Origin: Neoconidiobolus thromboides FSU 785
Taxonomy: Eukaryota > Fungi > Entomophthoromycota
Assembly (NCBI GenBank): GCA_025603075.1
Contig: MU626447.1
Span: forward strand, 1-37,153
Direction: 5' to 3'
DNA length: 37,153 nt
The position numbers and the translations under genes are program-made. The notes under the pieces were generated by a model. It was not told the origin of the DNA. It searched no databases and saw only the letters and a program-made list of their open reading frames with translations. The first letter of the stretch is position 1; each line of letters begins with the position of its first letter. Below are positions 5,148-37,153 of this stretch, in pieces.

Positions 5148-5560
5148 CTAATATTTAGCACACCTTTTACACTTTCCCTCCTCTATACACTTTACGTGAC
5201 TCAAATGGCCACATGGAAATACTATTACTTTTTCCCTATCCTCATTCCCATCCTCTTGCTCTCCTCTCCTTTCCACAGTAACTTTGAACCCACATTTAAC
5301 ACATCTTGGAGCAAAAGCTCTCAAACCTTTAACTCGATTTTTAAATTCTAATTTCAATACTTTAAAACAATCTTTAGCTACAATTTGTTTGGTTATTTGT
5401 AACATCTTTTTTTCATTTGAACAAGTATTAATTACAGATATCAATAAATCTTGAAATTCATTTAAAATAGCATTAGAAGTAGAATTTGATAAAGTCTCAT
5501 TTTTTGGTATTGATTCCAATAATTTAGTTAATAATTTAGGTACTGATAATTTAGTATTGA

Positions 5561-5591
<31 letters not shown>

Positions 5592-8500
5592 TCCCATTGA
5601 TGGATTAATGATTATAGTAAATAGATCTTGTATTAATTGTTGAATTATCAATTTGCATTCTTCTTTCATTTGTTTTTCAAATTCCGTTATCTCTTGAGTT
5701 TCATATATCTTTTGATTAGCCATTAATAAACATGAAATTAATTGATAATTTAACTCTAAACTTAATTCCATATTATTATCATTGAGTAAATTCACTTGAG
5801 ATCGATCACATAATCCCATACCAATAGCTGTCATTGTTTGAATTTTCATTAACTCAGATTCTGTTTTGTTTTTGATTTCGAATTTGGATTGTTTTTCTAC
5901 TTTTAGAGTATCTTGTTTCTCTCTATTACTTTTCAATAAGATTTCAATTGATTCAAATGATAGCTTTATAACTTTTAATATTTCTTCCATTGCTTCCATT
6001 AACTTTCCTTGAAGTTCCAATAAATAAACAATTCCATTTATAATCTTATATTTCTTTACAATTTCCATCATCTCATTAATAATTTTTTCATTACAATTGA
6101 ATTTCAAATAATTAATTACTTGATTACTATTAAATTGACATAATAAATTTAAATAATTTAATTTCAATTCATTATTAAATTCATATTCTTCATTAACCAA
6201 TTCCTTTAAATAATTATATTGTAACTCAGGTTCTTTATCTAGTAAAGGAATGACTTCGAATTCATTATCTTTGTACCAAAGTTGAATAATATTTTTAGTT
6301 TGTTTAGGATCAATTTTAGTTAATTGAATAAAATTTAATTCAATTTGATATTTAAATTCCTTCCATTTTTCGTCTTTTAATAGTGCATATGCTTTAATTA
6401 AAATTTCAAATATATCTTTGAACAATTCTTTATCTAATAAACAAACTAAAAACATATTCTTATAATCTTCTTCTTTTTCATAAACCCATTTTAATACCTT
6501 AAAAAAGCTAGCATTCAATAATATCTCTTTATCTCTTGGTTGATATATTTTAATCAAATTTAACATAACTTGTTGTCTTTCAATAAATGTAATATTAAAA
6601 TCTCTATCATTGATATTAGTTAATTCCATAAATATTTTATCCAAAATATTGAATTCTAATTTGATCTTTTGATTTACCGCTAATTTAATAAAAAATTCCA
6701 TCAATTTATATCGATTTTTTCCTATTAATTGAATCTTTTCATTTTCCCATAAACATTGTAAAAAGGGGTTTGTTAATTCTTGAAATAAATTCACATTGAA
6801 TTTCAATTCTAAATTATTAACACTTTGTTCTAAATTATTTAATATGTCTAATAATCCTTTACTATCTAACCAACATAAAAATTTAAAATATGGATACTCG
6901 ACACTCTCCTCTTCCTTACATAGTCCGTCTACTTTTGGTAATTTTATCTCTTTATCATCACCCCAACACATTTTATTTTGACTTAGAATCCATTTAGATA
7001 TTTGTTGAACTGCCAATTCATGAGATTGAGGGGACAAAGGTAACAAGGTGGGAAAGGATTTACCTTTAGTAATTATAATTAAATAATCTAATAATTTATT
7101 AAATTGTAATTGATTTTGATTTAATTGAATATTATTATTTAATTCTTCATTCATTATAATTTCTAAATTAAACTTATTACTATTATTTGAATTGTTTTGT
7201 TGTTGTTGTACTTCTAATTGAACTAGTAATTCTTTGATTGGTGTAATAAAATCTAACATAGCTGTAGAATATAAAAATAATAAACCATCTAATAATTGAT
7301 ATTGTTTACAAATCTTGGTGCATAAATCTAAATCTAATTTTAATGGATTTAAATGAAATAATATAGATTCTATTCGACTTATGTAATTCTTTTCTTTAGA
7401 ATAACAAATCAACCATTCTTTAATAAAATCCATTGGTAATTCTTCCAGAAAATCTATAATTATTGGGGTTGGAAACATAACATAAGGTTCAATAGCTAAA
7501 TATAAATATAAATTTAAGTTCATTAATTTGAGCTTTTCATAAATATTAATGAATAATAAATCTAATTCTCCTAATTCAAAACATGCTTGTACTACTGCTT
7601 TACAAAAGGCATCGACTTCTAACAAGTAATCTTTTCCTTCTTGTCTATTGCTTCCCCATTTTAATGTAAGGTGATTTAATGAAGCTAATAATAATGCTGA
7701 TATTTTATTTTTCATGATTTTTTTCCTTAAATTGATATTCTCAGATAACATTGAAAAGTAATAAATGGAACCTTCTTTTAAATAATGAGATGCTAATAAA
7801 ATAGCTTCAATAGCTTCTCCTTTATTAATTAAATTCATTACATGATCTGACCAACTTAATGGTAATCCAATTGTAAAATTCAAATTTCCTAACAAAAATA
7901 ATTTATTTTTATAACTTGTTAACCCATATTTATAATCTGGAATTATTTCATAATAATGTTGATCATTGTTATTATTATTGTTATTTGAATTAGTTAAATT
8001 AAATTCCTTCTTAGGATAATTTAATATTGGCTGATATTGACTTAATGAACCAATTGTTGTTGAATTATTTTTATTTTGAATATCTAATAAATGTAAGATT
8101 TCTCTTTGATCTAGTATTAATAAATTTCGATGATTAATCCAATTTAAACTTAATATAGAATAGTCACAATGAATTTCATTTAATTTGATGATGTCGATTA
8201 AATTATTATTATTATTCTCATTATTTAAACTAACTTTTAATATTATTAATACATTATTAAAACTAACAGCTAACAATGGATCATGTAATATTCCATCTAC
8301 TTTACTACTTGAATAAAATTTAATCATCGCATTTAATTGATTATTATTATTCTCTAATTCCATATCCGTTAAATTATATTTAAATTTCAAACTGTTTATT
8401 ATTTCTTTCTTAGTAATTGTATAAATGATTTCCGTTTTAGGTTTTAATCTCATAACAATCACTTCTTTATAACTCAAAATGGCCACTAAATTCATATCTT

Positions 8501-9903
8501 CCATACTTTTATTCAATCCAGTATATGATAATGTTTGCATATCTACTAATACGTCCTCAATACTTTTACTTTTACTTTTATTAATATAAATTAACTTTGA
8601 TTTACTACTCATGCCCATAATACCAGTTGATATATGATGATAAAATACATTGCCCATTTCATCTGCTGATAGAAACCTTTTAGATTTTCCTAGAAATTGA
8701 ACATTTCTAATTTGATTTCCTTTAATATGTCCTAATTTCTTAATACTCAATAAACTTTTTTTCTTTTCCAATATTGGTAATATTGTTGTTATGATTTGTC
8801 CTTTAATTAAATCCCAAATCGCTATTAATCCTTGACTATAACCTACTAATAGCCAATCACCATCTTTGGAAATATCTAAACTGGTAATACTACCATGTTC
8901 TAAAGCTAATAAAGTAAATTAATAAAATATATTAAATTAAATTCTTTTTTTAAAATATTAATTAATTTCTTACCAACTGCTGTATTCCCCAAAACAAATT
9001 TTAATTTTTGATGGAAATCAAACACAACTAATAAACCTTTCGAAGTAGCAAATACAATCCATTTGTTGACATAAAATAATAATGGTCTACCTAAACTTTC
9101 AATTGTCTGTTCATTAAATAATTGTTTAGTAATATGTGTTAATTGAATCCATTGAATCATACTATCTTCTTCATTATCTAACATTAATTCTTTATTTAAT
9201 TCCAATAAACTTTGAATTATTAAATTTTCATTTTCATTCATTGAATAGTTTGTCATATCATCTCGAGTATAAGTCATCGTTGTCATTGTGGGCGATAAAG
9301 GACTTAAGATCTATTATTAAAATAATATTAAAAAAATTCAAAATAATTAGGATGATTTAACTCACCCCTTTAATTGATTGAGAATAGTTCGAATCTAAAT
9401 CCTCTTGATATTCTATATCAATATCAAATGCTTCTTCAGCATTTAATATAGTATCTAAAATTAAATCTTTACCTAAATAATAATAATAAACTCAATTTGT
9501 TAAATAACTTGAAATCAAAATTACCTCCTTTAACAAACTCTTGGTACAAACTAACTTCCATTTCAATCCTTTCCAGTAATTCCCATCCTTTTTGTCTTGT
9601 CACTTCATCAAATCCAAATTTCCCACTTTCATCTAATTTTAATCTCAAACTCCTCATTATCAATTCTAATTCCTTGATATGCTCTAATAATACGCTATCG
9701 GTTACATCTGCAAGAAACTCTTCTTTTATGCACCAATAATCAAATTTTTTTTTATATTGTAATAATAATTGAGAAGTTAATCGTTGATTAGATTCACTTT
9801 GTTGAGTGAAAAAGTGTAAATTCTTAGAAGAAGAAGGTTTAAGCCCATTAGAACGTGGATGGGGAGAGATAGAAGTGGCATTGGTATATATATTGTCAAG
9901 CAT
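5148..9903 (-). CDS. VPS8: Vacuolar protein sorting 8 (CORVET subunit); 4 exons (9903-9525, 9472-9366, 9310-8974, ~8905-5148)
   Basis: WD40-like N-terminal region (IVFATSKGLLVVFDFHQKLKFVLG, GSITSLDISKDGDWLLVGYSQGLIAIWDL, FLSADEMGNVFYH), Vps8 core (YLAIEPYV...IESILFHLNPLKLDLDLCTKICKQYQLLDGLLFLY...DFITPIKEL), alpha-solenoid, and C-terminal RING (CVKC...FPCGHLSHVKC...CKRC). Confidence 0.9.
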
Positions 9904-10737: not shown

Positions 10738-12044
10738 ATGTTTGAGTTATCTTCAGAATATAGTAATCTTGATGGTTGGATTGAGCAATTAACTGAGTGT
10801 AAACCGTTAGCTGAATCAGATGTTAAAAAATTATGTGAAATTGTAAATCTATTTTTTTCTATATTTTCTATTTTAAAATAATAACGACCAGCATCTTATT
10901 TACTTATCTTTTGATCTTAATTAATAGAACCTATTGACTAATCCCCTTCTTTTTTCGATTTTTTTAGGCGCGTGAAATATTAAGCCTTGAATCCAATGTG
11001 CAACCAGTTAAATGTCCCGTCACTGTGTGCGGTGATATCCATGGACAATTCCATGATTTAGCTGAGTTATTTAAAATTGGAGGTAATGCACCAGATACAA
11101 ATTACTTATTTATGGGGGATTATGTCGATCGTGGTTATCATAGTGTTGAAACAGTCACTTTATTGATGGCTTATAAATGCAGATATAAAGAAAGAATTAC
11201 TATATTAAGAGGGAATCATGAATCCAGACAAATTACTCAAGTTTATGGGTTTTATGATGAATGTTTGAGAAAATATGGTAACGCTAATGTATGGAAAATG
11301 TTTACTGATTTATTCGACTATTTACCTTTAACTGCTTTAATTGAAAATCAAGTAAGTTGTGTTAAATAATTTAATATTTAATTTAATTTAATATTATAAT
11401 TAGGTATTTTGTTTACATGGTGGATTATCACCAGTTATTGATAATTTAGATCAAATCCGATCTTTAGATCGTATTCAAGAAGTACCTCATGAAGGACCTA
11501 TGTGTGATTTATTATGGTCAGATCCAGAGGATCGTACTGGATGGGGTATTTCTCCCCGTGGTGCTGGTTATACTTTTGGTCAAGATATTTCAGAAGCGTT
11601 TAATCATACCAATGGTTTAACTTTAATTGCTAGAGCTCATCAATTGGTTATGGAAGTAAGTTAAGTTATTTTAGTTATAAAAAGAAGAAAGAAGAATATT
11701 ATTATGAAAATCAACTAAAGTTAGGACAAAATTTATTAATGTTTATTTATTTATTTATTTATTAGGGTTATAATTGGTCCCAAGAAGGTAATGTAGTGAC
11801 TATATTTTCAGCACCTAATTATTGTTATCGTTGCGGCAATCAAGCTGCAATTATGGAATTAGATGAAAATTTAAAACATTCTTTGTAAGTTTATTTTTAT
11901 TTTTTAAAACTTTTTCGAACTATATTATAAATTCCATGGTTATTAATTGTATACTTTAAATATTTAATTAGCCTCCAATATGACCCTGCTCCTCGTAAAG
12001 GCGAACCTCAAGTTACTCGTCGTACTCCCGATTATTTCTTATAA
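10738..12044 (+). CDS. PPH21: Serine/threonine protein phosphatase 2A catalytic subunit; 5 exons (10738-10842, 10968-11351, 11404-11655, 11766-11884, 11972-12044)
   Basis: PPP motifs GDIHGQ, GDYVDRG, RGNHE, HGGLSP and [11 protein letters not shown], plus the PP2A-specific C-terminus RRTPDYFL*. Confidence 0.97.
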
Positions 12045-24210: not shown

Positions 24211-27136
24211 ATGTCATCTAATCAAGAAACCGCTCAACCTTCTGAGTCTACACTCGCTCCTGAGCCTATTACCATCTCTGAAGACTTAGAACAAACCCTA
24301 CCACAGGAACCTATTGTTGAAGCAGTAGAAAAAGAGTCAGAAGCTAAAGAAGCGCTAACTGAAGAAGCACCAGTTGAAGAAACCCAAGCTGAAGCCAAAC
24401 CAGAAGAAAAGGTAGAGCCTTCCATTATAGAAGAAGGTATTGTACATAAAAGGGGTCCTCTCCCTCTTCGTTTATGGCAGAAACGTATAATGACTTTTAC
24501 TGTTAGCAAGCAGAATTTTTCATTATATGATCTTCGTATTGTATATCGTAAAAACGTCAAGAAATCTCAAGCTCCTAAAGAAGAGTTTGAGAAGATTAAC
24601 AAACTCCTTTTTGAAACTATTGCTACCGCCACTGTAAACGCTAGTGATATTATTGTTTATTATAAACCAAATGTCAAAGATATTCCTCAAGGTTTAATCA
24701 ACCTTAAGCAAGTTCAATCTATAGAAGCAGCCCCAAAAGTCAAACCATTTGCTTTTTTGGTTAAAACTGAAGCCCGTGACTATATATTTAATGCACCTAA
24801 CAAGAAAGAGTTGGATTCTTGGATTCATACTATTTCTTCTAAGCTTGATAATGAAATTCCTGACTACTCTGATACCCAAGGTTATAAGTTCAGTTATGAG
24901 CATCTTGGTAAGTATATATTTTAAGTTAAGTTAAACTAATATATCTAATAATACTTTAGTTAACCGTAAAGGATTTACACCACCTGCTGCCTCAAACAAT
25001 CAAGATGAAGAAGTATTCTCTGCTTCTGAAGCCGAATTTGTAGGTGATGAAGTTGTACAAAAATCTAGCGAGGAGCCAGCACAGCCAGAGCAGGCTAATG
25101 CTGAGCCTCAACCCATCGCTACAGCTACTGAAGGATCTCAGCCTTCTGGAAAATCTTTCCTCAATGAAGTATTAGGAATCTTCTACCAAAAGAGTTCTGA
25201 GCATGATGCTGCCAATGGTGCTAAAGTAAATCCAGAAGCTGAGCCTAAAGTTGAAGAGGTAGTTGCAAAATCTGAAGCTGAATCCGCTCCCGTCACTGAA
25301 AATACTGAGGAAATAGCAGCTGAGAATGTTGAAGCTAAACCTGAAGCTGAAGCAGTAGTCGAATCAAATTCTAATCCGGTTGACCAAACTCCTAAGTCTC
25401 CTCGTACAAAGACATTCTCTTTCTCTGGTTTCCAAGGAAGTAAGTTCTTGTCCCTTTTCGGAAAATCCAAAGAAGAGCAAAAAGAAGAATCCAAAGTTGA
25501 ACCTGCTGCTGAAAATGCTGAACAAGAACCCGAAACAAAAGAGATTGTACCAGAAGTTGAGGTTAAACAAGAAACTGCTGAAACCGCAGAAAACACTGAA
25601 GCTCCAGTTGAAGCTGCCCAAGAAACTCCAGCTCATATAGAAGAGGAAGCCAGTGCTGCCGCTGCTCCAGCTGCAGAAGAAACCAAAGGAAAACCTGCCA
25701 ACTTTTTGAGCCGTGTATTTTCTTTAGCTAAACCTAAGAACGCAAATGCTGGCAAACCTGAAGAAGCCGCCGGAGCCAAATCTGAAGAAGCACCTAAAGA
25801 AGTCGAAACTGAAGCCCCTGTTGCTACTGAAGAAGCTCAAGTGGAAGCTATTCCAGAAGCTATTCCAGAAGCTATTCCAGAGACTGCTGAAACTGAAGAG
25901 ACTAAAGTCGAAACTGAAGAAATAGCTGCATCTGCACAACCTGAAGTTGTTGAATCTGTTGCTGAAAAGAAAGGAAACTTTTTTTCAAGAATCTTATCAA
26001 AGCGTAAACCTAATGGCGCTGCTCCAGCTCTAGTTGATGAAGTAAAGGAAACACCTATTCCAGAAGCTACTGAAGAAATTAGCGAACCTATCCCAGAAAT
26101 ACAAGCTACTGAGGAAAATAAAGAGGATTTACCTGAAATTGAGCCAGAAGCTAAAGAAGTAGTTGAAGAAACAATTGTCATTGCCGCTTCTGAACCGGTA
26201 CCAGAACTTGAACCAAAGACTGTTGAGGAAGTTCCTGCCATTGAAGCTCTTACTGAAGCACCTGTTGAAAGCAAACCAGAGGAGGTTGCTGAAGTAAAAG
26301 AAGAGGAAGTAGCCTTACCTGAAGCAGTTGAAAAAGTTGAAGCTCCTGTTTCAGAACTTCAAGAAGATACACGCCCATTTTTAGTCCGTGTTTTATCTGG
26401 AAAGCGCAAAGAAAAGCCAGTTCCAGAAACCAAGGAACCTGAAGTAACAGGGGAAGTACCAGTTGAAGTTGTTCCTGTAGAGGAAGTTAGAGAAGTTGAA
26501 GAGCCTGTTGCTGCTGAACCAATTAAAGAGGTTGAAGCTGAAGCCGAAGCCGAAGCTGCCTCAGCTACTGCTCAAGAAGCTACTCCAGCCCGTCAAGCTT
26601 CCTTAATTGCACGTATTGGAGGTTATGCTTACTCTGCAGTTTCGCCCACCTCTGGTGCTATCCCAGAAGAGTTAAATGAAGAAATCTCTGAACATTATAA
26701 AGCTCTTATTGAAGAAGTCGAAGCCGAACATTACGGATTTGTCTTTAAGCAATCTTACCTCTTACATTCTAATAATCACCGCTTTGCAATCCTTGGTAAA
26801 GAGGGTTTGTTTGTTTATTACCACGATGCCCAAGCCCCATCTGAAGGTAAAAAGATTGTAATCAACGATTCTGTCACTATATTGCCATATGGTGAAAATG
26901 CTTTCATCATCAAAACATCTAGCCAAAGCTATACTTTCTCCGCCCATACCGCTGAAGATGCTGAGAAATGGATCAAAGCACTTTCTAAGTTTGGAAAACA
27001 AGCTGATGTCGAAGTTGTTCCAGAAATTCAACCTGAAGTAGTTGCTGCAGTAACTGCTGAAGAAGAAGCACCAATTACGATTGCTACTGAAGAAGTTGCT
27101 ACTACCGAAGAATCCAAAGTCACTACTGAAGCCTAA
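24211..27136 (+). CDS. PH-domain protein, paralog 1 (~957 aa): N-terminal PH with insertion (Meu6/PH_6-like), Glu/Ala/Pro-rich disordered region, C-terminal PH; exons 24211-24907 and 24960-27136
   Basis: N-PH: EEGIVHKRG...LWQKRIMTF...PQGLINLKQV...AFLVKTEARDYIFNAPNKKELDSWIHTI. A 52-bp phase-1 intron; I translated exon 2 and it is open from 24960 into ORF 25448-27136. C-PH: GFVFKQSYLLHSNNHRFAIL...AFIIKTSSQSYTFSAHTAEDAEKWIKAL. Confidence 0.88.
25844..25879 (+). repeat. Coding 12-bp tandem repeat x3, (EAIP)3
   Basis: GAAGCTATTCCA, three exact copies. Confidence 0.85.
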
Positions 27137-27365
27137 TTTAGTTTGTTAATTCGATCAACCAGTTGATGTTTGGTTTTTAATTCATATCATCTTGATATTT
27201 TATTCTTATTTACCTCTTAATATTATATTCATCATTTTAATAAAGCTAATTACAATATATATATTTTGGAAATGGAGTTATCTATAGTTTTTTATAATAT
27301 GACTAATTAAAATTGGAGAGTTTTTAGGATTTAAGTTGAGATTTTGCGAAATTCCTTCACAATAT

Positions 27366-27462
27366 GGGGATGTATTTTTGTATTTGAGAATTTACTAATA
27401 ATTTTTCTATTCAAATAGCGCTTAAAAGATGGAAAAAATAATGAAGCCAAAAAAACCTCCCC
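27366..27462 (+). mobile_element. MITE-like element copy 6 (97 bp)
   Basis: GGGGATGTATTTTT...AAAAAAACCTCCCC. ATAT at 27362-27365 and 27463-27466. Confidence 0.87.
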
Positions 27463-27921
27463 ATATATAAGCTAACTGAATATTATAGGTTTTAATCAGT
27501 TAAATTTTTAAAATAATGTTTTTAAGATATTTAAAAATTAACAACTTTGAAATTTCATAATAGTTTTGAAACATTACTGATTAACTTTTTAAATTAGAAT
27601 TTATTTTTTAATTTAAATAATACAATAACTTTTGATTAAAATGGCATTAACAGACCATTTTAACTAAATATACTATAATGTATTTTAATATTAAAGAGCT
27701 ATAATTGTAATTCTAAAGTTATAGCATGTTAATTAATATTAATCTTTGTAATATAGAAATAATGCTAGAGAATAACTTTGAACAATCTCTTAAATGGCCA
27801 TAATATTTATAAGAAATTTATAAAATAAGCTAAATAAAAAGGGAAATAGTAAAAGTATGATGAAATCTTAACAAGAATCACATGTGTTTTGTTTCAAGCT
27901 GACAATTACCAAATTAATTTA

Positions 27922-27939
27922 AACCGAGCTTGAAAATAA
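27922..27939 (+). promoter_or_regulatory. Candidate conserved upstream element of PH paralog 2
   Basis: AACCGAGCTTGAAAATAA, matching 24000-24018. Confidence 0.4.
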
Positions 27940-28156
27940 GGCGTATTGAGAGAAATGGTTACTGGTATTCTTAGAAAGCTGTTCATATTAAAAATAAGAA
28001 CACAATTTCTTTATCGAATAATTGTTTCAACAAATAATATTCATTGATTTCGAAAAATTGCATTTTTAGCTTAAATAACTTGTTTTTAAATTGATAACCA
28101 AAAGGCACTAAATCCTACCTTTGTTTTTTTACTTAATAAACTTAATTTACTTTATT

Positions 28157-30302
28157 ATGGCTCTTACTAGCAACAAAGTAGTACCTTTAATTAATACAGA
28201 AAAGTCCGATATTTCCAATAATATTAGCCTTGAAGCTGCTAAAACTGCTGTTGTTCTTGATTCTGCTTTAGAAGGAAGATCTCCAGAAGTACCAGAGAAA
28301 GATGTAACTGAAGCGCCAGCTCTCCCAGTAAAGGATGACCTTAATATTTCAGCGAATCCAAATAGAACAAAAAGTGTAAATATAGCTTCAACGCAGAAGA
28401 TACTGAAATCTAAAGATGGTGCTATCTCTAAACGTGGTGGATTCCCCCTTTACTTGTGGCATAAGCGTTCTATTTCTCTCAGAGCAAGTAACAACCCATA
28501 TTCTCTATATGACCTTCGCACATTTTACAACAGTAAAGTTGTTAATATCCAAGGTTCCAAAGCTGCATTTGAAAAATCAAATGCTCAATTATTTGATACC
28601 ATTGCAACTGCTACTGTCGATCCTTCTAGAGTTATTTCTTATTTCAAACCTGAAGATAATAGCACTCCTCGTAGCTTGATTGATATCAAAGATATTGTAT
28701 CAATTGAACCAAAGTATAATATTAAGAAAGAAGCCTTTAGTATTATTACCAAGGATAAGAATGAGTTAATCTTTAGTACTAGATCCTTAGAAGAATCTAA
28801 GTCTTGGATTAATGAAATAAAAGAAAGGATGTCACATAAGCCTGTTGACCTATCCAAAAATGAGACATACAAAGCTAACTATCAACATTTAGGTAATTTA
28901 TTTATAACTAAACATTTAATAGCTAAAGTTTGTTTTTAGTTGGAAGAAAGGGATTCCAAAACCCAGTAGCAGTTAAAAAGGAAGCTAGCCCAGTACCAAA
29001 GATAGAAGTTGAAGCTATCAAAAACACCAAAATTGAAGTACTAAGCGATGATAAAAACAACCTAGTAGATAATGATGAACAACCTAGTGTTCCAAGAAAG
29101 TCGTTCTCACATGAGGTAATGGCCACTTTAAATTCAAAGCTTGGAAAGGAAGAGCCCAAAAGAGTACCAATTCCAGTTGATGCTGAGCCTCAGTCCAACC
29201 CTGCTAGTGCTAATTCTACTCAAATCGGAACTGGGACGGATCTTAATTTTCAAACGGCCCTTTCTCAACCAGAAGCTGTTGGCTCTACTAACTTGACTAA
29301 TACGGAGATTTTATTAGATGAACAGGCTGCTGTTCAGTCTACAGTTTTTGAGAATGAAGTAGAAACTAAACAGATTCAACAACAGGCTCCTAAATCTATT
29401 GAAGTAGAGGAAATTAAATCAGACATTGATAATCATTCTGGGATTCCGGCTGAGCCTCTAGTCTTAGGAAATGATTCTAATAAGGTTGTTTCAGAACACC
29501 AAGATGCTTCTATTTCTTCATTAAAGGCTAAAGATGAGATTGCTCATAAAGGTAAATAGTTATATATATTTGTATAGAGTTAATTAAAAATATAGAATCC
29601 GAAGTTAAGGAAGAACAATTAACTGATTCACCATTAAAAAATGAACATATCATAGAAACTATCAACAAATCTATCAGTGATGTACAAGGAGATGAACAGC
29701 CTAAGAACGACTCAGATTCTACAACATTACCTAGAACCCCTGAATCAAAAGATTTAGCGATTATTGAAACCGATACTATTGCTATCAATGAATTGGCTAA
29801 AACTGAAGAAATTAAACCTATTCAAGATTCTGTAAAAGAAGTTAGTAGTAATATTGAAGCTATTAAAGAGGAAGCTGTAAGTTCAAATCCAGACGTTGAT
29901 TCTCAGAAATTATCTGAACCTTTAATGGAAATCGAGGTTGTTGGCGATTCAAAAGTTAGTGAATATGCTCCAGAGACCCCAAAAAAGGAAGGTGAGACCC
30001 CAGAAGTCCCAGTAAAACAAGAAGAGGCCCCAGAAGTTCCAGTAAAACAAGAAGAGGCCCCAGAAGTTCCAGTAAAGCAAGAAGAGGCCCCAGAAGTTCC
30101 AGTAAAACAAGAAAAGACTCCAGAAGTTCCAGTAAAACAAGAAAAGGCTCCAGAAGTGCCTAAGAAGGAAGCTAATAACATTAAAGCATTAAAAGACCAT
30201 GAAAATTTAGAGGTAAAAAAGTCACTACCAAATCTAAAGGATGGTAAAGGTTCGGTAAGTTCTAGCAAGAGCAAGAAGAAAAAGAAGGGAAAGAAACATT
30301 AA
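28157..30302 (+). CDS. PH-domain protein, paralog 2 (~684 aa): N-terminal PH, acidic Pro-rich tail, polybasic C-terminus, no second PH; exons 28157-28892, 28940-29551, 29596-30302
   Basis: PH: DGAISKRGGFPLYLWHKR...YSLYDLR...IATATVD...SLIDIKDI...AFSII...FSTRSLEESKSWINEI. Intron 1 is at the same HLG|V position as in paralogs 1 and 3. Both introns (47 and 44 bp) join the ORF-track segments in frame. Ends SKSKKKKKGKKH*. Confidence 0.87.
30000..30167 (+). repeat. Coding 30-bp minisatellite, 5 full copies plus a partial copy, (PEVPVKQE[E/K][A/T])n
   Basis: Unit CCAGAAGTTCCAGTAAAACAAGAAGAGGCC, with 1-3 substitutions between copies. Confidence 0.92.
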
Positions 30303-30567
30303 TGTTGAATGCGGGCATTTCCTAATTTAGTAAATTACTACTTAATATTAAATTTTACCTTAATATCACAACTTAATTCTTCAATTAATATAATAAAAGC
30401 CCCCCCTCCTTAATTTTAAATATTTAAATATTTTAGTTTTAAGTAATTTGATATGTTTAAAGTCTTTAATAAAATATTTTCGCATTTTTGGATCAAAAGT
30501 TAAAAATAATGTTCACATAATTTATGGTTTATTTAGATAGGATACAATTGATAAAAACTGAAAATAT

Positions 30568-33090
30568 TTAATTAACTACAGCGATCTCCTCTACTCCTTC
30601 ATTTAATACTTCTACAGCCTTCTCTGGCTCTTTAGCTTCTTGCTTACTTTCAATCACATCTTGGATAACTTTTACCCAAAGATCCCTCTCCTCAGCAAGT
30701 TTAGTCAAGAAGGTATAGGCTTGCCCTTGAGATTTAATATTGAATGAAAGTTCATCCACAGCATCAATTTGAGAATCCTTATCAAGGATAATTTTCTTAC
30801 CTTCAGATACTACTGCACCTGAACGATAGTATATAAATTCTCCTTCTTTATTTAAGATAGCAAAGCGTTGGTTGTTAGAATGGAGTAAATAGGATTGCTT
30901 AGTAATATATCCAGATCTTATTGCTTCTTTGCTTAACTCTTGATAATGCTCATTCAACTCTTCTTCTTCTTCAATAGCGGCTGGGTATGCTGGAACAACA
31001 GCAGAATAAGCAAGCTCTCCAATACGAGATATCAAGGAGGGTTGACGAGCTGGGCCAGATGGAGCCTCTTCAGTGCTTTGAGGCTCTTTCTCAGTTTCAA
31101 CTTCAGTCACAGCCACAGCCTCAGGTTCTTCAGAAATTACTTCAGCTTCGAATGGAGCTTCAGTATTTTCTACATCAAGTACTGGTGGTTCATCATTATT
31201 TCCCTCTTCTACATTTTCCTCAGCAGGCAAAACGGGCTCTTCTTGAGGTTTAGGAGAAGTTGGTGAGCCAAATAAGGATTTACGCTTTCCTGATAAAACT
31301 CTAACGATAAATGGACGTTTGTCTGTTTCAGGCTCTTCAGGTTCAGAAGTTACTTCAACGGGCTCAGTTACTTCCTCTTTGGTTACCTCTTCTAATGGAG
31401 TTTCAACTGGCTCTTCAGCTTTTGGTGAGGTGGGCTCCATAGTAGACTTGCGTCTTCCAGATAAAATTCTTCTAATAAGGTTAGGTTCTTCCTTTGGTTC
31501 CTCTTTTGGGTCTTCTTTTATTTCAGAAGTTTCAGGCTCTTCAGTTTCTACAGGTGTTTCGGCTTCAGTTTCAACCTCAGGATCAGATTCTTTGCTTACA
31601 GGAACAGGCTCAATGGTTGATTTACGCTTTCCCGATAAAAGTCTAACCAAGAAAGGACGTGCTTCTGGCTCTTCAACTTGAGCTTCTTCAACAATATCTT
31701 CAGTAGCTTCTTCAACAGCTGTTTCAGCAAGTTGTTCTTGTTCAACTTCTAGTTCAGTTTCAATAGGGGCTACTTCAACAGGAGCTACCTCGATTTTTGA
31801 TTTACGCTTCCCAGAGAGAATCCTTGCTAAAAATGGACGTTTATCCTCTTCATCTTCGGTTTCTGGGATTACAGATTCAGGTACGTCTGATTGAGTCTCA
31901 CCTTCTACGGGCGCATCTGCTTGTGCTTCAGCTTCAACTGGGATTTCTGGTGCTATAAGGGCATTTGGAGTCTCAATTTTAGATTTACGGTTTCCAGATA
32001 AAAGTCTAACTAAGAAAGGACGTGTTTCTTCATTAGTAGGCTCTGGTTGAGATTCTGACTCTGGCTGTAAAGTGATTTCTTCTGCCTGTTCTTGAGCTTC
32101 TACTTCATTTACAGGAGAGGATTCTTCTGGATTATGAGCTTGTGCTTGTGTTTCCTCATCAGCTTTAGCTGTAGATTCTTTATTCTCATCTTTTCCAAAC
32201 ATAGCCAAAATACCGGTTTGAATCCCAAGAAGAGAAAATGCCTGAGACTTAGGTCTAGAAGGCTCTTCTTCAGTTGTTTCAGCCTGTGCTTCATGTTGGT
32301 CCTCTGCTTCAGGAACTTCACTTTCTTTAGCCTCTTCGGCTTCTTCGGTCTTTTCGATGTTTTCAACCGTATCGGATGTAGCTTCAGCTGAAGGCACTTC
32401 GTCAGAAACAAACTCTGCTTCAGAAGCAGAAAAAACTTCTTCCTCATTTTGATTACTAGCTGGGGGAAAGAAACCTTTACGATTAACTAAATAAAGTTAG
32501 ATATAATTGTATAAATGTATAAATAATGGTTTACCCAAATGGTCATATGAAAATTTAAAGGCTTCAGTATCATCATAGTCAAACATTTCACTGTTCAATC
32601 TATTTTGTATTGAAGTAACCCATAAATCAGTTTCATCTTTACTTGGAGCAGAAAAGACATAATCCCGATTTTTAGAATGGATGATGAAAGCGTTAGATTT
32701 TATACGAGGTGCTCTTTCGACTGATTTAACATGCTTTAAATTAATTAAGCCCTGGGGCAAGTCCTTTGCATTCACTTTATAATATGCTAAAATAGCGTTA
32801 GTATTGACAGTGGCGGTAGCTAAAGTTTCAAATAGGTCTTTATTAGCCTTTTCAAATTCAGCGCGATTAGACTGGGATTTCTTTACATTTTTCTTATATA
32901 CAGTTCTTAATTGGTAGAGAGAAAACCCTTGATGAGAGCTGGGAAAAGCTAAGTAGCGTTTTTGCCATAATCTTAATGGGAAAGGACCTCGTTTGGATAT
33001 GATACCTTCCTCGATCAAAGTAGGTTCAGGAATGGCCTCGATAGGAGCTTGGTTATGTGCTTCATTTGAAGTATCGTTATTTGATGACAT
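30568..33090 (-). CDS. PH-domain protein, paralog 3 (~824 aa): N-terminal PH, acidic region with five RPFLxRxLSGKRKS motifs, C-terminal PH; exons 33090-32535 and 32486-30568
   Basis: N-PH: EEGIISKRGPFPLRLWQKRYLAF...PQGLINLKHV...DYVFSAPSKDETDLWVTSI. A 48-bp phase-1 intron at HLG|V. C-PH: SGYITKQSYLLHSNNQRFAILNKEG...YTFLTKLAEERDLWVKVI. Closest to paralog 1. Confidence 0.88.
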
Positions 33091-34462
33091 TGTATTTTTA
33101 ACTATAAATAAGAAAATAAACAAAAATTCTAAGGTTTAAAAAAGTTCACGATATTAACAAAAGCTCAACTTTATAGTGATCCCAATATAAACTCCGGGGG
33201 TAGCAATTATGGTTGCTGAAAAGGAGGTGTATAAATGGCGAATTTAATAAAATGGGTTAGAAGTTTCCATTTTAAGATAGTAAATTAAGGCAAGTTACTA
33301 GGAATATTATTTTATTAACCCTTTTTAATTGTCCATTTTATGATATATATTCTATTCACATTCTTTTTTGTTAATTATTTCAGTTGAAAGGAGTTTTTTT
33401 CAACGGTCATTACCTTAATTTTTATTCCTGCTTTTTTTTTCCGGTAAGCTTAATTCTGAGCCACTTTTAAGGGCTATTTATTAAAATTCGATTACTTTTA
33501 TTACAAAAAAGTAATTAAAGTGAACTTTATATTAAAAATATTGGCTTTGGCATAAACCTTTGTAATTATGCACTAGTTTACTTGGATCACTTTGTTATGT
33601 TATTCTTTGTTTTATAAAACTGCTAAGCTATATTTTAAAGGCCTGTTTTTATTACGGTTAGCAATGAAATCTTCTGAAGCAAAATATACAATTAAGCGGT
33701 TACATTTTGTTACATTAAGCTATAAAAAGTATCTTATGCTTATAACCATTCTAAAGCGTGATGTTATTTAAGCATAAATGTTCAAGTCATTCATCAATAT
33801 TTAAGTATATTTGTCATCCATAAACATTTGGTTGTATGGTTTCGTAAACTGCAAAAAATAAAATTCAATTTTTAACTTGATTTTTTAAATTTAAAGTCAA
33901 AGTTCAATTTAGCATTTAAATGTTTGCAATTATAATAAAGTACTTTGAAAAACAAACAGCCCAAAACTTCGGAGTATACTGGTGAGTTATTGTCATTATA
34001 TAATATATGATTTATTTTTTATTTTTTATTTTGCGAACATTCTTTTATTGTGCTTTATTTCATTTAAAAAAGAGTCAATCAACTGTTGTTTATGCTATAA
34101 GATTATTTACTTTTATATTACAGCTAATATTTTGAGTACAAGTTAATACTATAGTTTAAACGAAAAGGAAATAGTATATAAGAGTTGAATAAAAACATAT
34201 ATGAGATTTGTTTTTTATGACATTTACTATTATCAATCAATATCTTATGCTAGTTTATAGACGATTACCTTTGCTTAATAAATATATAAAAAGTACTGTA
34301 ATTTCTAATACTTAATATTTATGTCTCCTATTATAGTTATTTAAAATTTGGGCTCTTGTATCAAATAAATACAGAAAACTGATGGTTGATTATTAAAAAT
34401 TTTGTAATTCAATAATAAATCGTAACAATTATCAAATATTCTTAACTTGAAAATGATTAAAT

Positions 34463-36356: not shown

Positions 36357-37153
36357 ATGCTTCAATTTATCATCGTTACATTATTATTAAGCCAAAGCTT
36401 GATCAGTCAAGCTATAATTCAAGGCAATGATGAGCGCTTACCTAATGTTGCTAATGATCCTAACTTGGCCATTTTTATTGAAGGATTAAAAATAATTAAA
36501 TACACCTATGTAGATAAAAAACCACCCAACTTTTCTGGTTTCACAGGGTCAAATTTAAAGTCTAGTACTCCAGAAGAAGCTCAAAGAGTTTCTAGTTTTG
36601 CTGGTGCAGCTTATTGCTCTACTCATACATTAACAAGTTGGAAGTGTAATCATTGTGAAAGAATAGGAGCAGGTATCCAAGTTAAACATATTTTTGAAGA
36701 CCTTTTTACAGGAGGTAGAGGTTTCTTAGCTTTAGATGAAGCTAAGAAGCAGATTATTGTATCATTTAGAGGCAGTTATAATATACAAAATTGGGTCGGC
36801 AATGCCAGGCTCTTGCAATCACAATATTTGGTTGAAAGTGGTGGTACTGATATTTATATACATACTGGATTTAAAGATGGAATAAACGCTTTACTACCAA
36901 AATTTAAAAATGAGTTTGATACTTTATTAAAAGAGCATGGTGATTTTAAGGTCATTGTTACAGGCCACTCTTTAGGTGGTGCTATGGCTACTTTAGCTTC
37001 AATTGAACTTAAAAAAGCTTTTGGTTTAAACTGGGATAGAATTGAATTGTTTACTTATGGTGAGCCAAGGGTAGGAAACCTTGCTTTTGCTGAATGGTTT
37101 AACTCTCAAACGTTAACCGTATCTCGTGTTGTCAATGATAGAGATATTGTACC
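36357..37153 (+). CDS. Secreted class 3 lipase (Rhizomucor/Rhizopus-type alpha/beta hydrolase), 3'-truncated by the window end; absent from the ORF track because no stop codon is in the window
   Basis: Open frame: MLQFIIVTLLLSQSLISQA (signal-peptide-like)...AAYC...WKCNHC...IIVSFRGS...HTGF...VIVTGHSLGGAMATLAS...LFTYGEPRVGN...SRVVNDRDIV. The GHSLG nucleophile motif is at 36963-36977. Confidence 0.95.
   Translation, partial: MLQFIIVTLLLSQSLISQAIIQGNDERLPNVANDPNLAIFIEGLKIIKYTYVDKKPPNFSGFTGSNLKSSTPEEAQRVSSFAGAAYCSTHTLTSWKCNHCERIGAGIQVKHIFEDLFTGGRGFLALDEAKKQIIVSFRGSYNIQNWVGNARLLQSQYLVESGGTDIYIHTGFKDGINALLPKFKNEFDTLLKEHGDFKVIVTGHSLGGAMATLASIELKKAFGLNWDRIELFTYGEPRVGNLAFAEWFNSQTLTVSRVVNDRDIV

Follow-up and report, generated by a model that had tools for sequence, protein, structure and literature searches.

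The window analysed here, a 37,153-nucleotide (nt) stretch that makes up one entire scaffold of the insect-pathogenic fungus Neoconidiobolus thromboides FSU 785 (GCA_025603075.1, contig MU626447.1), is very AT-rich, with approximately 22% G+C outside 24–33 kb, and within 24–33 kb it carries three neighboring genes, designated G1, G2 and G3, each encoding a protein with an N-terminal PH domain. The gene models were built from open reading frames (ORFs) and splice signals, and each model forms one open frame. The net charge of the products is -106 for G1, -22 for G2 and -93 for G3, those of G1 and G3 being rich in Glu and also in Ala, Val, Pro, Ser and Thr. The arrangement given in the original prediction, three paralogs in the order +, +, - with an N-terminal PH domain in each, was borne out by the gene models, by Pfam PH matches (E-values of 5e-9 to 5e-11) and by RNA contigs, while its description of the proteins as 'giant' does not suit products of 957, 684 and 824 amino acids (aa). 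The genes and their parts are the following (AF2, AlphaFold2 model):

G1, exons 24211–24907 and 24960–27136, + strand: product of 957 aa, sequence-derived
24211–24907, + strand: G1 exon 1, acidic N-terminal tail and Meu6-type PH domain (about 24418–24906), from the ORF, donor site, Pfam and AF2
24908–24959, + strand: G1 intron, 52 nt, GT..AG, phase 1, from the sequence, frame continuity and a site common to G2, G3 and Massospora
24960–27136, + strand: G1 exon 2, encoding the conserved post-PH Ser motif (acidic), an acidic linker that contains the basic-hydrophobic motifs, the second PH domain and an acidic tail
G2, exons 28157–28892, 28940–29551 and 29596–30302, + strand: product of 684 aa
28157–28892, + strand: G2 exon 1, N-terminal tail with two PxxPxK sites and a divergent Meu6-type PH domain
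28893–28939, + strand: G2 intron 1, 47 nt, GT..AG, phase 1, at the G1/G3 site, RNA joint in three runs
28940–29551, + strand: G2 exon 2, disordered, free of basic-hydrophobic islands
29552–29595, + strand: G2 intron 2, 44 nt, RNA joints
29596–30302, + strand: G2 exon 3, PEVPVKQEE(A/T) array (29961–30170) and polylysine tail (about 30258–30299)
G3, exons 33090–32535 and 32486–30568, - strand: product of 824 aa
32535–33090, - strand: G3 exon 1, Meu6-type PH domain (32536–33024), from Pfam, spanned by an RNA contig
32487–32534, - strand: G3 intron, 48 nt, GT..AG, phase 1, RNA joint in three runs (CT..AC on the + strand)
30568–32486, - strand: G3 exon 2, encoding an acidic linker with five motif units, then the pre-PH motif and the second PH domain (about 30643–30933)

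All three are spliced and transcribed genes. Contigs of RNA runs aligned to positions 27700–33400, which cover G2 and G3, contained the joints 28892/28940 and 29551/29596 of G2 and 32535/32486 of G3 exactly, in three runs. In run X1 (word depth of the contigs about 700–945) a 1605-nt contig spanned G2 and a 2452-nt contig spanned G3 from 30585 to 33084 with the intron absent, both without a mismatch. For G1, 97% of the sampled words were present in one RNA run, which fits removal of the 52-nt intron. An alternative acceptor of the second G2 intron, 9 nt downstream (joint 29551/29605), was seen in run X19 only and drops three codons in frame. The three genes were found in several RNA runs from two studies with no sign of sexual-stage restriction, and the RNA contig depths of the cluster, a rough measure only, were high. 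RNA runs labelled organism B contained window-identical contigs together with a second variant of roughly 88–94% identity, located at 28255–28560, 29265–29923, 31006–31297 and 32037–32224, with 6-nt deletions at 31104 and 32146; this variant could be a second allele, a strain or a paralogous copy of G2 and G3.

The G2 product is identical to KAI9292454.1 (NCBI). The stored calls of GCA_025603075.1 for G1 (188 residues, 24358–24921) and G3 (197 residues, 32497–33090) comprise exon 1 only, the latter running past the donor site into the intron, and the second exons of G1 (2.2 kb) and G3 (1.9 kb) lie outside every stored gene call. The first intron is GT..AG and phase 1 in all three genes and sits at an identical codon position. 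The original prediction had placed it at HLG|V(N/G)RKGF; site and phase were correct, but the Gly before the junction was not, since the split codon g|tt encodes Val and the product reads HL-V-(N/G)-R-K-G-F. The predicted structure of G2 also had to be amended by its second intron of 44 nt.

The N-terminal domains scored 43.6 (G1), 36.9 (G2) and 41.9 bits (G3) against the Pfam family PF00169 (gathering score 25.1; E-values of 4.5e-11 for G1 and 1.6e-10 for G3). With PH_6 (PF15406, gathering score 30), G1 and G3 passed at 30.5 and 34.8 bits, while G2 reached 20.8 bits and remained under the gathering score. Despite this low score, G2 fell inside the Entomophthorales clade beside G1 and G3 in the domain tree described below, on a branch of 1.42, and, judged from this position, it is a divergent PH_6-family member by descent. 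The AF2 model of the G1 N-terminal domain, obtained with a 21-sequence family alignment, had a predicted local distance difference test score (pLDDT) of 94.8 and consisted of strands 1–7, the C-terminal helix and one extra helix, with a three-helix insert between strands 2 and 3 (model residues 37–46, 54–60 and 62–73). Its best Swiss-Prot structural match was Schizosaccharomyces pombe Meu6 (O94356, E 8.4e-9), residues 104–273 of which match query residues 1–163, that is, the whole domain. Among solved structures the best matches were the phosphoinositide-binding PH domains of PLEKHA7, TAPP1, PEPP1, Akt1 and DAPP1, several of them inositol-phosphate-bound; the PDB structural search gave 102 matches at E<=0.001, and all 50 listed were PH domains, one of them inside GRK2. 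Feature-label searches of a protein atlas again produced only 'PH / Meu6 PH', with scores <0.9. As had been suggested, the N-terminal domain is thus of the PH_6/Meu6 type, with a predicted PH fold that carries a three-helix insert.

The C-terminal PH domain of G1 scored 25.2 bits with PF00169, barely above the gathering score of 25.1. The best match of its G3 counterpart was PH_3 with 22.4 bits, PF00169 giving 18.3 bits, below the gathering score. The C-terminal segment of G3 is 48% identical to that of G1, whose AF2 model is a canonical PH domain (pLDDT 81.6, >90 across the domain) with generic PH domains as fold neighbors.

Between the two PH domains of G1 and G3 lies an acidic linker of about 500–600 aa with a net charge of about -80. 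The two proteins aligned at 40% overall, with long gaps between conserved patches, namely the PH domains, the DEEVFSASEAEF motif, the basic-hydrophobic motifs and the RQxSLIxRIG..AYSAV segment before the second PH domain, in agreement with the expectation of hardly alignable linkers around conserved domains and motifs. The motifs are the following:

25004–25053, + strand: G1 acidic motif DEEVFSASEAEF right after the first PH domain; G3 counterpart at 32396–32445, 82% inverted DNA match
25145–25198, + strand: G1 motif M1, KSFLNEVLGIFYQK type, from the G1/G3 alignment; counterparts in Massospora, Logan proteins and Dimargaritales
25430–25471, + strand: G1 basic-hydrophobic island M2, RTKTFSF..KFLSLFGKSK
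25682–25747, + strand: G1 basic-hydrophobic island NFLSRVFSLAKPK
25961–26020, + strand: G1 basic-hydrophobic island NFFSRILSKRKPN
26366–26425, + strand: G1 basic-hydrophobic island RPFLVRVLSGKRKE, 79% DNA match to the G3 copy
26579–27061, + strand: G1 pre-PH motif (RQASLIARIG..AYSAV) and C-terminal PH domain (about 26729–26989), from Pfam, alignment and AF2
31264–32029, - strand: five G3 units RPF(L/I)xR(L/V)LSGxRKS, 168–183 nt apart, from DNA repeats and protein alignment

The five G3 units are spaced by 56–61 residues and share 62–87% DNA identity, indicating that the copies are old, and G1 has three copies related to them plus two other motif types. With an island defined as a 14-residue window of net charge >=+3 containing >=4 hydrophobic residues, the linkers were compared with 1000 shuffles each. 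Four islands were counted in G1 against 0.59 in shuffles (count reached by 1/1000) and five in G3 against 0.46 (0/1000), which upholds the prediction of an acidic disordered chain dotted with basic-hydrophobic patches and, together with Pfam and AF2, the PH-linker-PH plan with motifs proposed for these two proteins. Most of the motifs hold or follow a Ser/Thr in a basophilic-kinase consensus (RRxS, RxKT, RQxS, RLLS, KRKS). The motif after the first PH domain reads S-D-x-E-(V/L/M)-(F/L)-S-(G/A/S)-(S/G)-(E/D) in the relatives; it is kept in Zoopagomycota and Mucoromycota and lost in G2, and it contains CK2-type sites and bears a partial resemblance to FFAT motifs. Pfam searches with the linker pieces gave noise only, with no MARCKS, WH2 or AKAP family and no docking domain or motif. 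A WH2 reading was also rejected on the motif itself: FLVRLLSG would suit the amphipathic helix of WH2, but the residues after it are KRKS instead of LKK(T/V).

When the three N-terminal PH domains were used for an exhaustive profile search, 273 matches were obtained at E<=1e-3. Twelve cluster representatives matched the whole domain at E<1e-24, two of these being the products of the G1–G3 locus itself. The close relatives belong to Massospora cicadina, Entomophthora muscae, Basidiobolus meristosporus (two copies), Dimargaris, Tieghemiomyces and Dispira, and the more distant ones to Glomeromycotina (Ambispora, Geosiphon, Funneliformis, Diversispora, Acaulospora), Lunasporangiospora, Calcarisporiella and Jimgerdemannia; all are annotated as 'hypothetical' or 'PH domain-containing', and their PH_6 scores are 37–63 bits. 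The PH_6-linker-PH form was recognized by Pfam in two Logan proteins (which group with Massospora), in Dimargaritales and in Ambispora, while in Massospora the second PH domain was seen through sequence motifs and alignment. With Entomophthora included, the double-PH layout occurs in Glomeromycotina, Dimargaritales and Entomophthoraceae (examples are KAI0223911.1, RKP36678.1 and CAG8599357.1), and the idea of a system private to this three-gene cluster had to be abandoned. Basidiobolus has the first PH domain only. A single PH domain, assumed beforehand to be usual for PH_6/Meu6 proteins, is indeed found in the ascomycete members (lichen-forming Teloschistales, 583–666 aa), which have a near-neutral tail (net charge of -3 to -6); no second-PH stretch was found in the three ascomycete PH_6 proteins inspected for it.

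Nearly all linkers of the relatives contain 3–6 basic-hydrophobic islands, far above shuffles (4 vs 0.25 in Basidiobolus, 4 vs 0.14 in Dimargaris and 6 vs 0.95 in Ambispora), and these are in a constant order: an RRxS-(Y/V)(F/L)..F.K type comes first, then an R(S/T)KTF..KFF.K type, then an (S)P(F/I)..R(L/T)L(S/T) type and finally an RQxS(L/F)..R(I/L/F)G type immediately ahead of the C-terminal PH domain. This order is common to Basidiobolus, Dimargaritales and Entomophthorales. No match came from a word-based search for homologues of the C-terminal portion of G1, probably owing to stored calls that lack exon 2 and to the few exact words common to the orthologues. A relative in GCA_014839935.2 (L003:10001-14682) is called as two products of 264 and 1277 aa, which would give about 1,480 aa if joined; its junction, the same as in G1–G3, follows ..YRQL, and it has the motif DEVFSASEMEF, a hugely expanded EQEPE-rich linker, three motifs of the basic-hydrophobic kind and a C-terminal PH domain, and represents a truly large form of the family. 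Literature searches on Meu6, SPBC428.07, AN3674, PF15406 and MARCKS-like fungal proteins yielded no functional study, and no characterized family with this architecture turned up there, as the original prediction had expected; the PH_6-linker-PH form is already present in public databases as uncharacterized proteins, and no paper describing the architecture was found.

The shared intron, along with the shared PH domain, had been taken as a sign of local duplication. In the Massospora orthologue, a phase-1 intron of 32 nt occupies precisely this site (..NQL|AERKGF), the gene of GCA_014839935.2 has the same junction by reading, and the Dimargaris gene is intronless. The presence of the intron in Massospora indicates that it is ancestral in Entomophthorales and predates the local duplication, so that the intron by itself proves nothing in this respect. 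In a maximum-likelihood tree of the N-terminal PH domain, Entomophthorales formed a clade with support of 100/100, within which G1, G2, G3 and the GCA_014839935.2 fragment formed one group (80/79), and Massospora with the Logan proteins stood separately (100/99). Branching inside the first of these groups was not separated, the G2 branch was long, and between the ascomycete members and the rest lay a branch with a length of about 2 substitutions per site. No tandem copy was found near the Massospora gene (within 10 kb; 22 kb inspected) or near the Dimargaris gene (6–10 kb on each side; 19 kb inspected). Adjacency and tree together speak, with modest statistical support, for local duplication followed by remodelling of G2, so that the duplication part of the claim stands and the locus probably represents a tandem, partly inverted triplication of a Meu6-related (PH_6) gene. 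Recent gene conversion between G1 and G3 was unsupported, as a search for long identical stretches found none.

The cluster differs from three neighboring long ORFs in its G+C content at the first (GC1, 0.50–0.62 vs 0.28–0.34), second (GC2, 0.35–0.39 vs 0.18–0.25) and third codon position (GC3, 0.22–0.24 vs 0.13–0.17). The high G+C is therefore mainly an amino-acid effect, and a foreign origin of the cluster is not indicated, GC3 rising little. C-ending synonymous codons are several-fold commoner in the cluster than in neighboring genes, which, together with the high contig depth, fits abundant, highly expressed proteins. Elsewhere on the scaffold, a 1207-aa ORF (5148–8771, - strand) with poly-Asn tracts and a Cys-rich C-terminus was taken by eye to be RING-like and Vps8/Vps41-like, an exon at 10998–11369 (+ strand) presumably belongs, also judged by eye, to a PP2A-type phosphatase catalytic subunit, and a Lipase_3 gene lies at the scaffold end (36549–37151, + strand); none of the three has an apparent functional tie to the PH cluster.

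G2 has lost the second PH domain, the basic-hydrophobic motifs and the post-PH motif, and its linker has no islands against 1.69 in shuffles. Instead, it contains ten PxxPx[K/R] sites where 0.47 were expected (the shuffle maximum was 4 in 1000 runs), compared to none in G1 and one in G3; seven of the ten originate from a 30-nt repeat present in 5.5 copies at 29994–30157 (Tandem Repeats Finder, 94% matches). The C-terminus ends in ..SKSKKKKKGKKH, with a polylysine tail closing as KKKKKGKKH. The predicted succession of PH domain, PxxPxK array and polylysine tail was therefore confirmed, and the sites match the class II SH3-ligand consensus PxxPx(K/R), making them candidate SH3 ligands. G2 is a fast-evolving copy in which the putative membrane-type motifs have been replaced by SH3-type consensus sites and a polybasic tail.

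As for the function, the favored reading, to which we give an even chance, is that proteins of the G1/G3 type act as a phospho-switchable, multivalent membrane scaffold similar to MARCKS. G1 and G3 would be peripheral on an anionic, phosphoinositide-rich membrane through many weak contacts provided by the two PH domains and four to six basic-hydrophobic helices, and the acidic loops between these anchors would be repelled from the membrane, forming a brush or spacer. Phosphorylation by basophilic kinases would release the motifs one by one, in an electrostatic switch as in MARCKS or Pom1. G2 would be a derived adaptor that has kept the PH anchor and presents proline motifs to SH3 proteins. The cortical position, lipid binding, phospho-regulation, bridging of membranes, SH3 recruitment and part in sporulation or tip growth put forward in the original prediction are all conjectural. 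The uniformly basic and hydrophobic motifs in a chain with a net charge of about -80 are what membrane binding predicts. Pom1 of fission yeast attaches to the plasma membrane through a basic-hydrophobic region and an amphipathic helix, both tuned by phosphorylation at multiple sites (PMC6555594), and AN3674, a distant Meu6 homologue of Aspergillus nidulans, has 13 mapped phosphosites (PMC8399174).

Compared to known proteins, G1 and G3 have an N-terminal PH domain whose helical insert, located between strands 2 and 3, is also present in S. pombe Meu6 and the ascomycete PH_6 proteins, and the latter too possess a long disordered tail, in which a few motifs of the RRxS-FF..KK type occur. The ascomycete proteins, however, have about 580–670 aa, one PH domain and a near-neutral tail at low identity to G1/G3, which relative to this architecture have an added second PH domain, a linker of about -80 and amplified motifs. 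The PH_6-linker-PH proteins of Entomophthora, Massospora, Dimargaritales and Glomeromycotina agree in domain order, post-PH acidic motif and ordered basic-hydrophobic motifs; in contrast to the three adjacent copies of N. thromboides with its remodelled G2, Massospora and Dimargaris have single genes where the flanks were inspected. MARCKS is an acidic, Ala/Glu/Pro-rich disordered chain with short basic-aromatic segments that contain basophilic-kinase serines and act as an electrostatic membrane switch. The likeness of G1/G3 to it, an acidic disordered chain and short basic segments with kinase serines (FS..KK, LSG), is an analogy only: the three proteins begin with MSSN, MALT and MSSN and have no Gly for myristoylation, they have several motifs rather than one effector domain, they possess PH anchors and they gave no Pfam MARCKS match at E<=1. 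By their sequences, G1–G3 are not members of the MARCKS family. AKAP12 (gravin/SSeCKS), a long acidic disordered scaffold with several polybasic membrane-binding patches, is likewise comparable by analogy only, as G1–G3 had no Pfam AKAP12 match, no myristoylation site and no identified RII-binding helix. In pleckstrin and the fungal Opy1, two PH domains stand near each other or are parted by a DEP domain. These proteins resemble G1/G3 in having two PH domains per chain, and pleckstrin PH is among the fold neighbors; in G1/G3, however, the domains are 500–600 disordered residues apart, and no sequence kinship beyond the PH fold was seen.

Several observations weigh against the membrane scaffold. 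The family consensus of strands 1–2 is KRGPxPLRLWxKRYF, and >=90% of the 21 family members keep the Lys/Arg of strand 1 and the final Arg of strand 2, but the K-Xn-(K/R)-X-R signature is partial, with Gln, Asn or Lys at the first basic position of strand 2 and W-Q-K-R where Akt has W-R-P-R, which makes the lipid specificity, and even lipid binding, of either PH domain uncertain. The hydrophobic moments of the motifs are moderate (0.43–0.72 vs a 95th percentile of about 0.47), and since the ranking does not separate the motifs cleanly, it lends the scaffold weak support only. The P-F-L/I-x-R-L/V-L-S-G motif is tighter in sequence than generic membrane patches require, a hint of a specific protein partner. 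Contig word depth is a poor gauge of expression, and the sole functional labels in the family lead in another direction, S. pombe Meu6 being labelled a 'meiotic chromosome segregation protein' with a suggested nuclear localization signal (NLS) (PMC1885245).

The constraint on the motifs favors protein-recruiting adaptors of the AKAP/IRS/Gab type, in which the PH domains would merely position the protein and each linker motif would be the docking point of a specific partner, for instance calmodulin, 14-3-3, a kinase or else a phosphatase; the partners of G2 would be SH3 proteins, and membrane contact of the motifs would be incidental. Individual motifs keep their identity and order from one subphylum to the next: SPI(K/Q)RTL(S/T).L(L/F) is present in Basidiobolus as well as Dimargaritales, and P-F-(L/I)-x-R-L-L-S-G is found throughout Entomophthorales. 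The PH fold neighbors include the adaptors Gab2 and SKAP, and G2 has its ten SH3-ligand consensus sites. Nevertheless, we regard such adaptors as rather unlikely: Pfam found no docking domain or motif family in the linkers, there is no known partner, and uniformly basic and hydrophobic motifs in a chain of about -80 are the expectation for membrane binding, with which adaptor function would in any case be compatible rather than exclusive.

A tether at membrane contact sites, with the N- and C-terminal PH domains on different membranes and the post-PH motif serving as an FFAT-like, phospho-dependent VAP ligand as in PH-FFAT lipid-transfer proteins, appears distinctly unlikely. The separation of two PH domains by 500–600 disordered residues, conserved across phyla, would suit it. 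The FFAT consensus is E-(F/Y)-(F/Y)-D-A-x-E with an upstream acidic tract, and the post-PH motif, which also has an acidic tract upstream, fits E-F-F-D-A-x-E at positions 1, 3, 5 and 7 and has Ser at position 4, as in phospho-FFAT. The motif reads E-V-F-S-A-S-E, however, and its position 2, aromatic in known FFAT motifs, is Val, Leu or Met in all relatives; on this ground the FFAT assignment was rejected. Moreover, there is no lipid-transfer or transmembrane domain, Basidiobolus and the ascomycete relatives have no second PH domain, and nothing points to different lipid preferences of the two PH domains. That the proteins are nuclear or meiotic factors, following the Meu6 label, is very improbable: Meu6 is a late meiotic, lysine-rich gene product with a putative NLS (PMC1885245) and the KRKS and KKKKKGKK stretches of the KRK-rich motifs and polylysine tail are NLS-like, but the NLS statement is a sequence-based guess in a review that itself calls the function unclear (PMC1885245), PH domains and hydrophobic-basic motifs are atypical of chromatin proteins, the meu6 gene of S. 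japonicus shows raised expression in hyphae (PMC8594269), and G1–G3 occur in RNA runs of both studies with no sexual-stage restriction seen.

The membrane scaffold can be extended, as a doubtful conjecture, to the whole family, which would then be a fungal counterpart of animal MARCKS/GAP43/BASP1, that is, an abundant, multivalent, kinase-releasable, PH-anchored acidic brush on the phosphoinositide-rich membranes of coenocytic early-diverging fungi, with G1/G3 as two-ended spacers, G2 as the SH3-recruiting adaptor and Meu6 as its reduced Dikarya descendant.

The G1 and G3 gene models are hereby corrected from exon-1 stubs, and G2 offers a clean natural case of motif turnover after tandem duplication. 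The family occurs in both Zoopagomycota and Mucoromycota, with insect pathogens and arbuscular mycorrhizal fungi among its carriers, and is apparently well expressed. Its common plan, consisting of a Meu6-type PH domain, an acidic Ser motif, ordered basic-hydrophobic motifs with kinase sites and a second PH domain, provides a testable hypothesis for the whole family and for S. pombe meu6.

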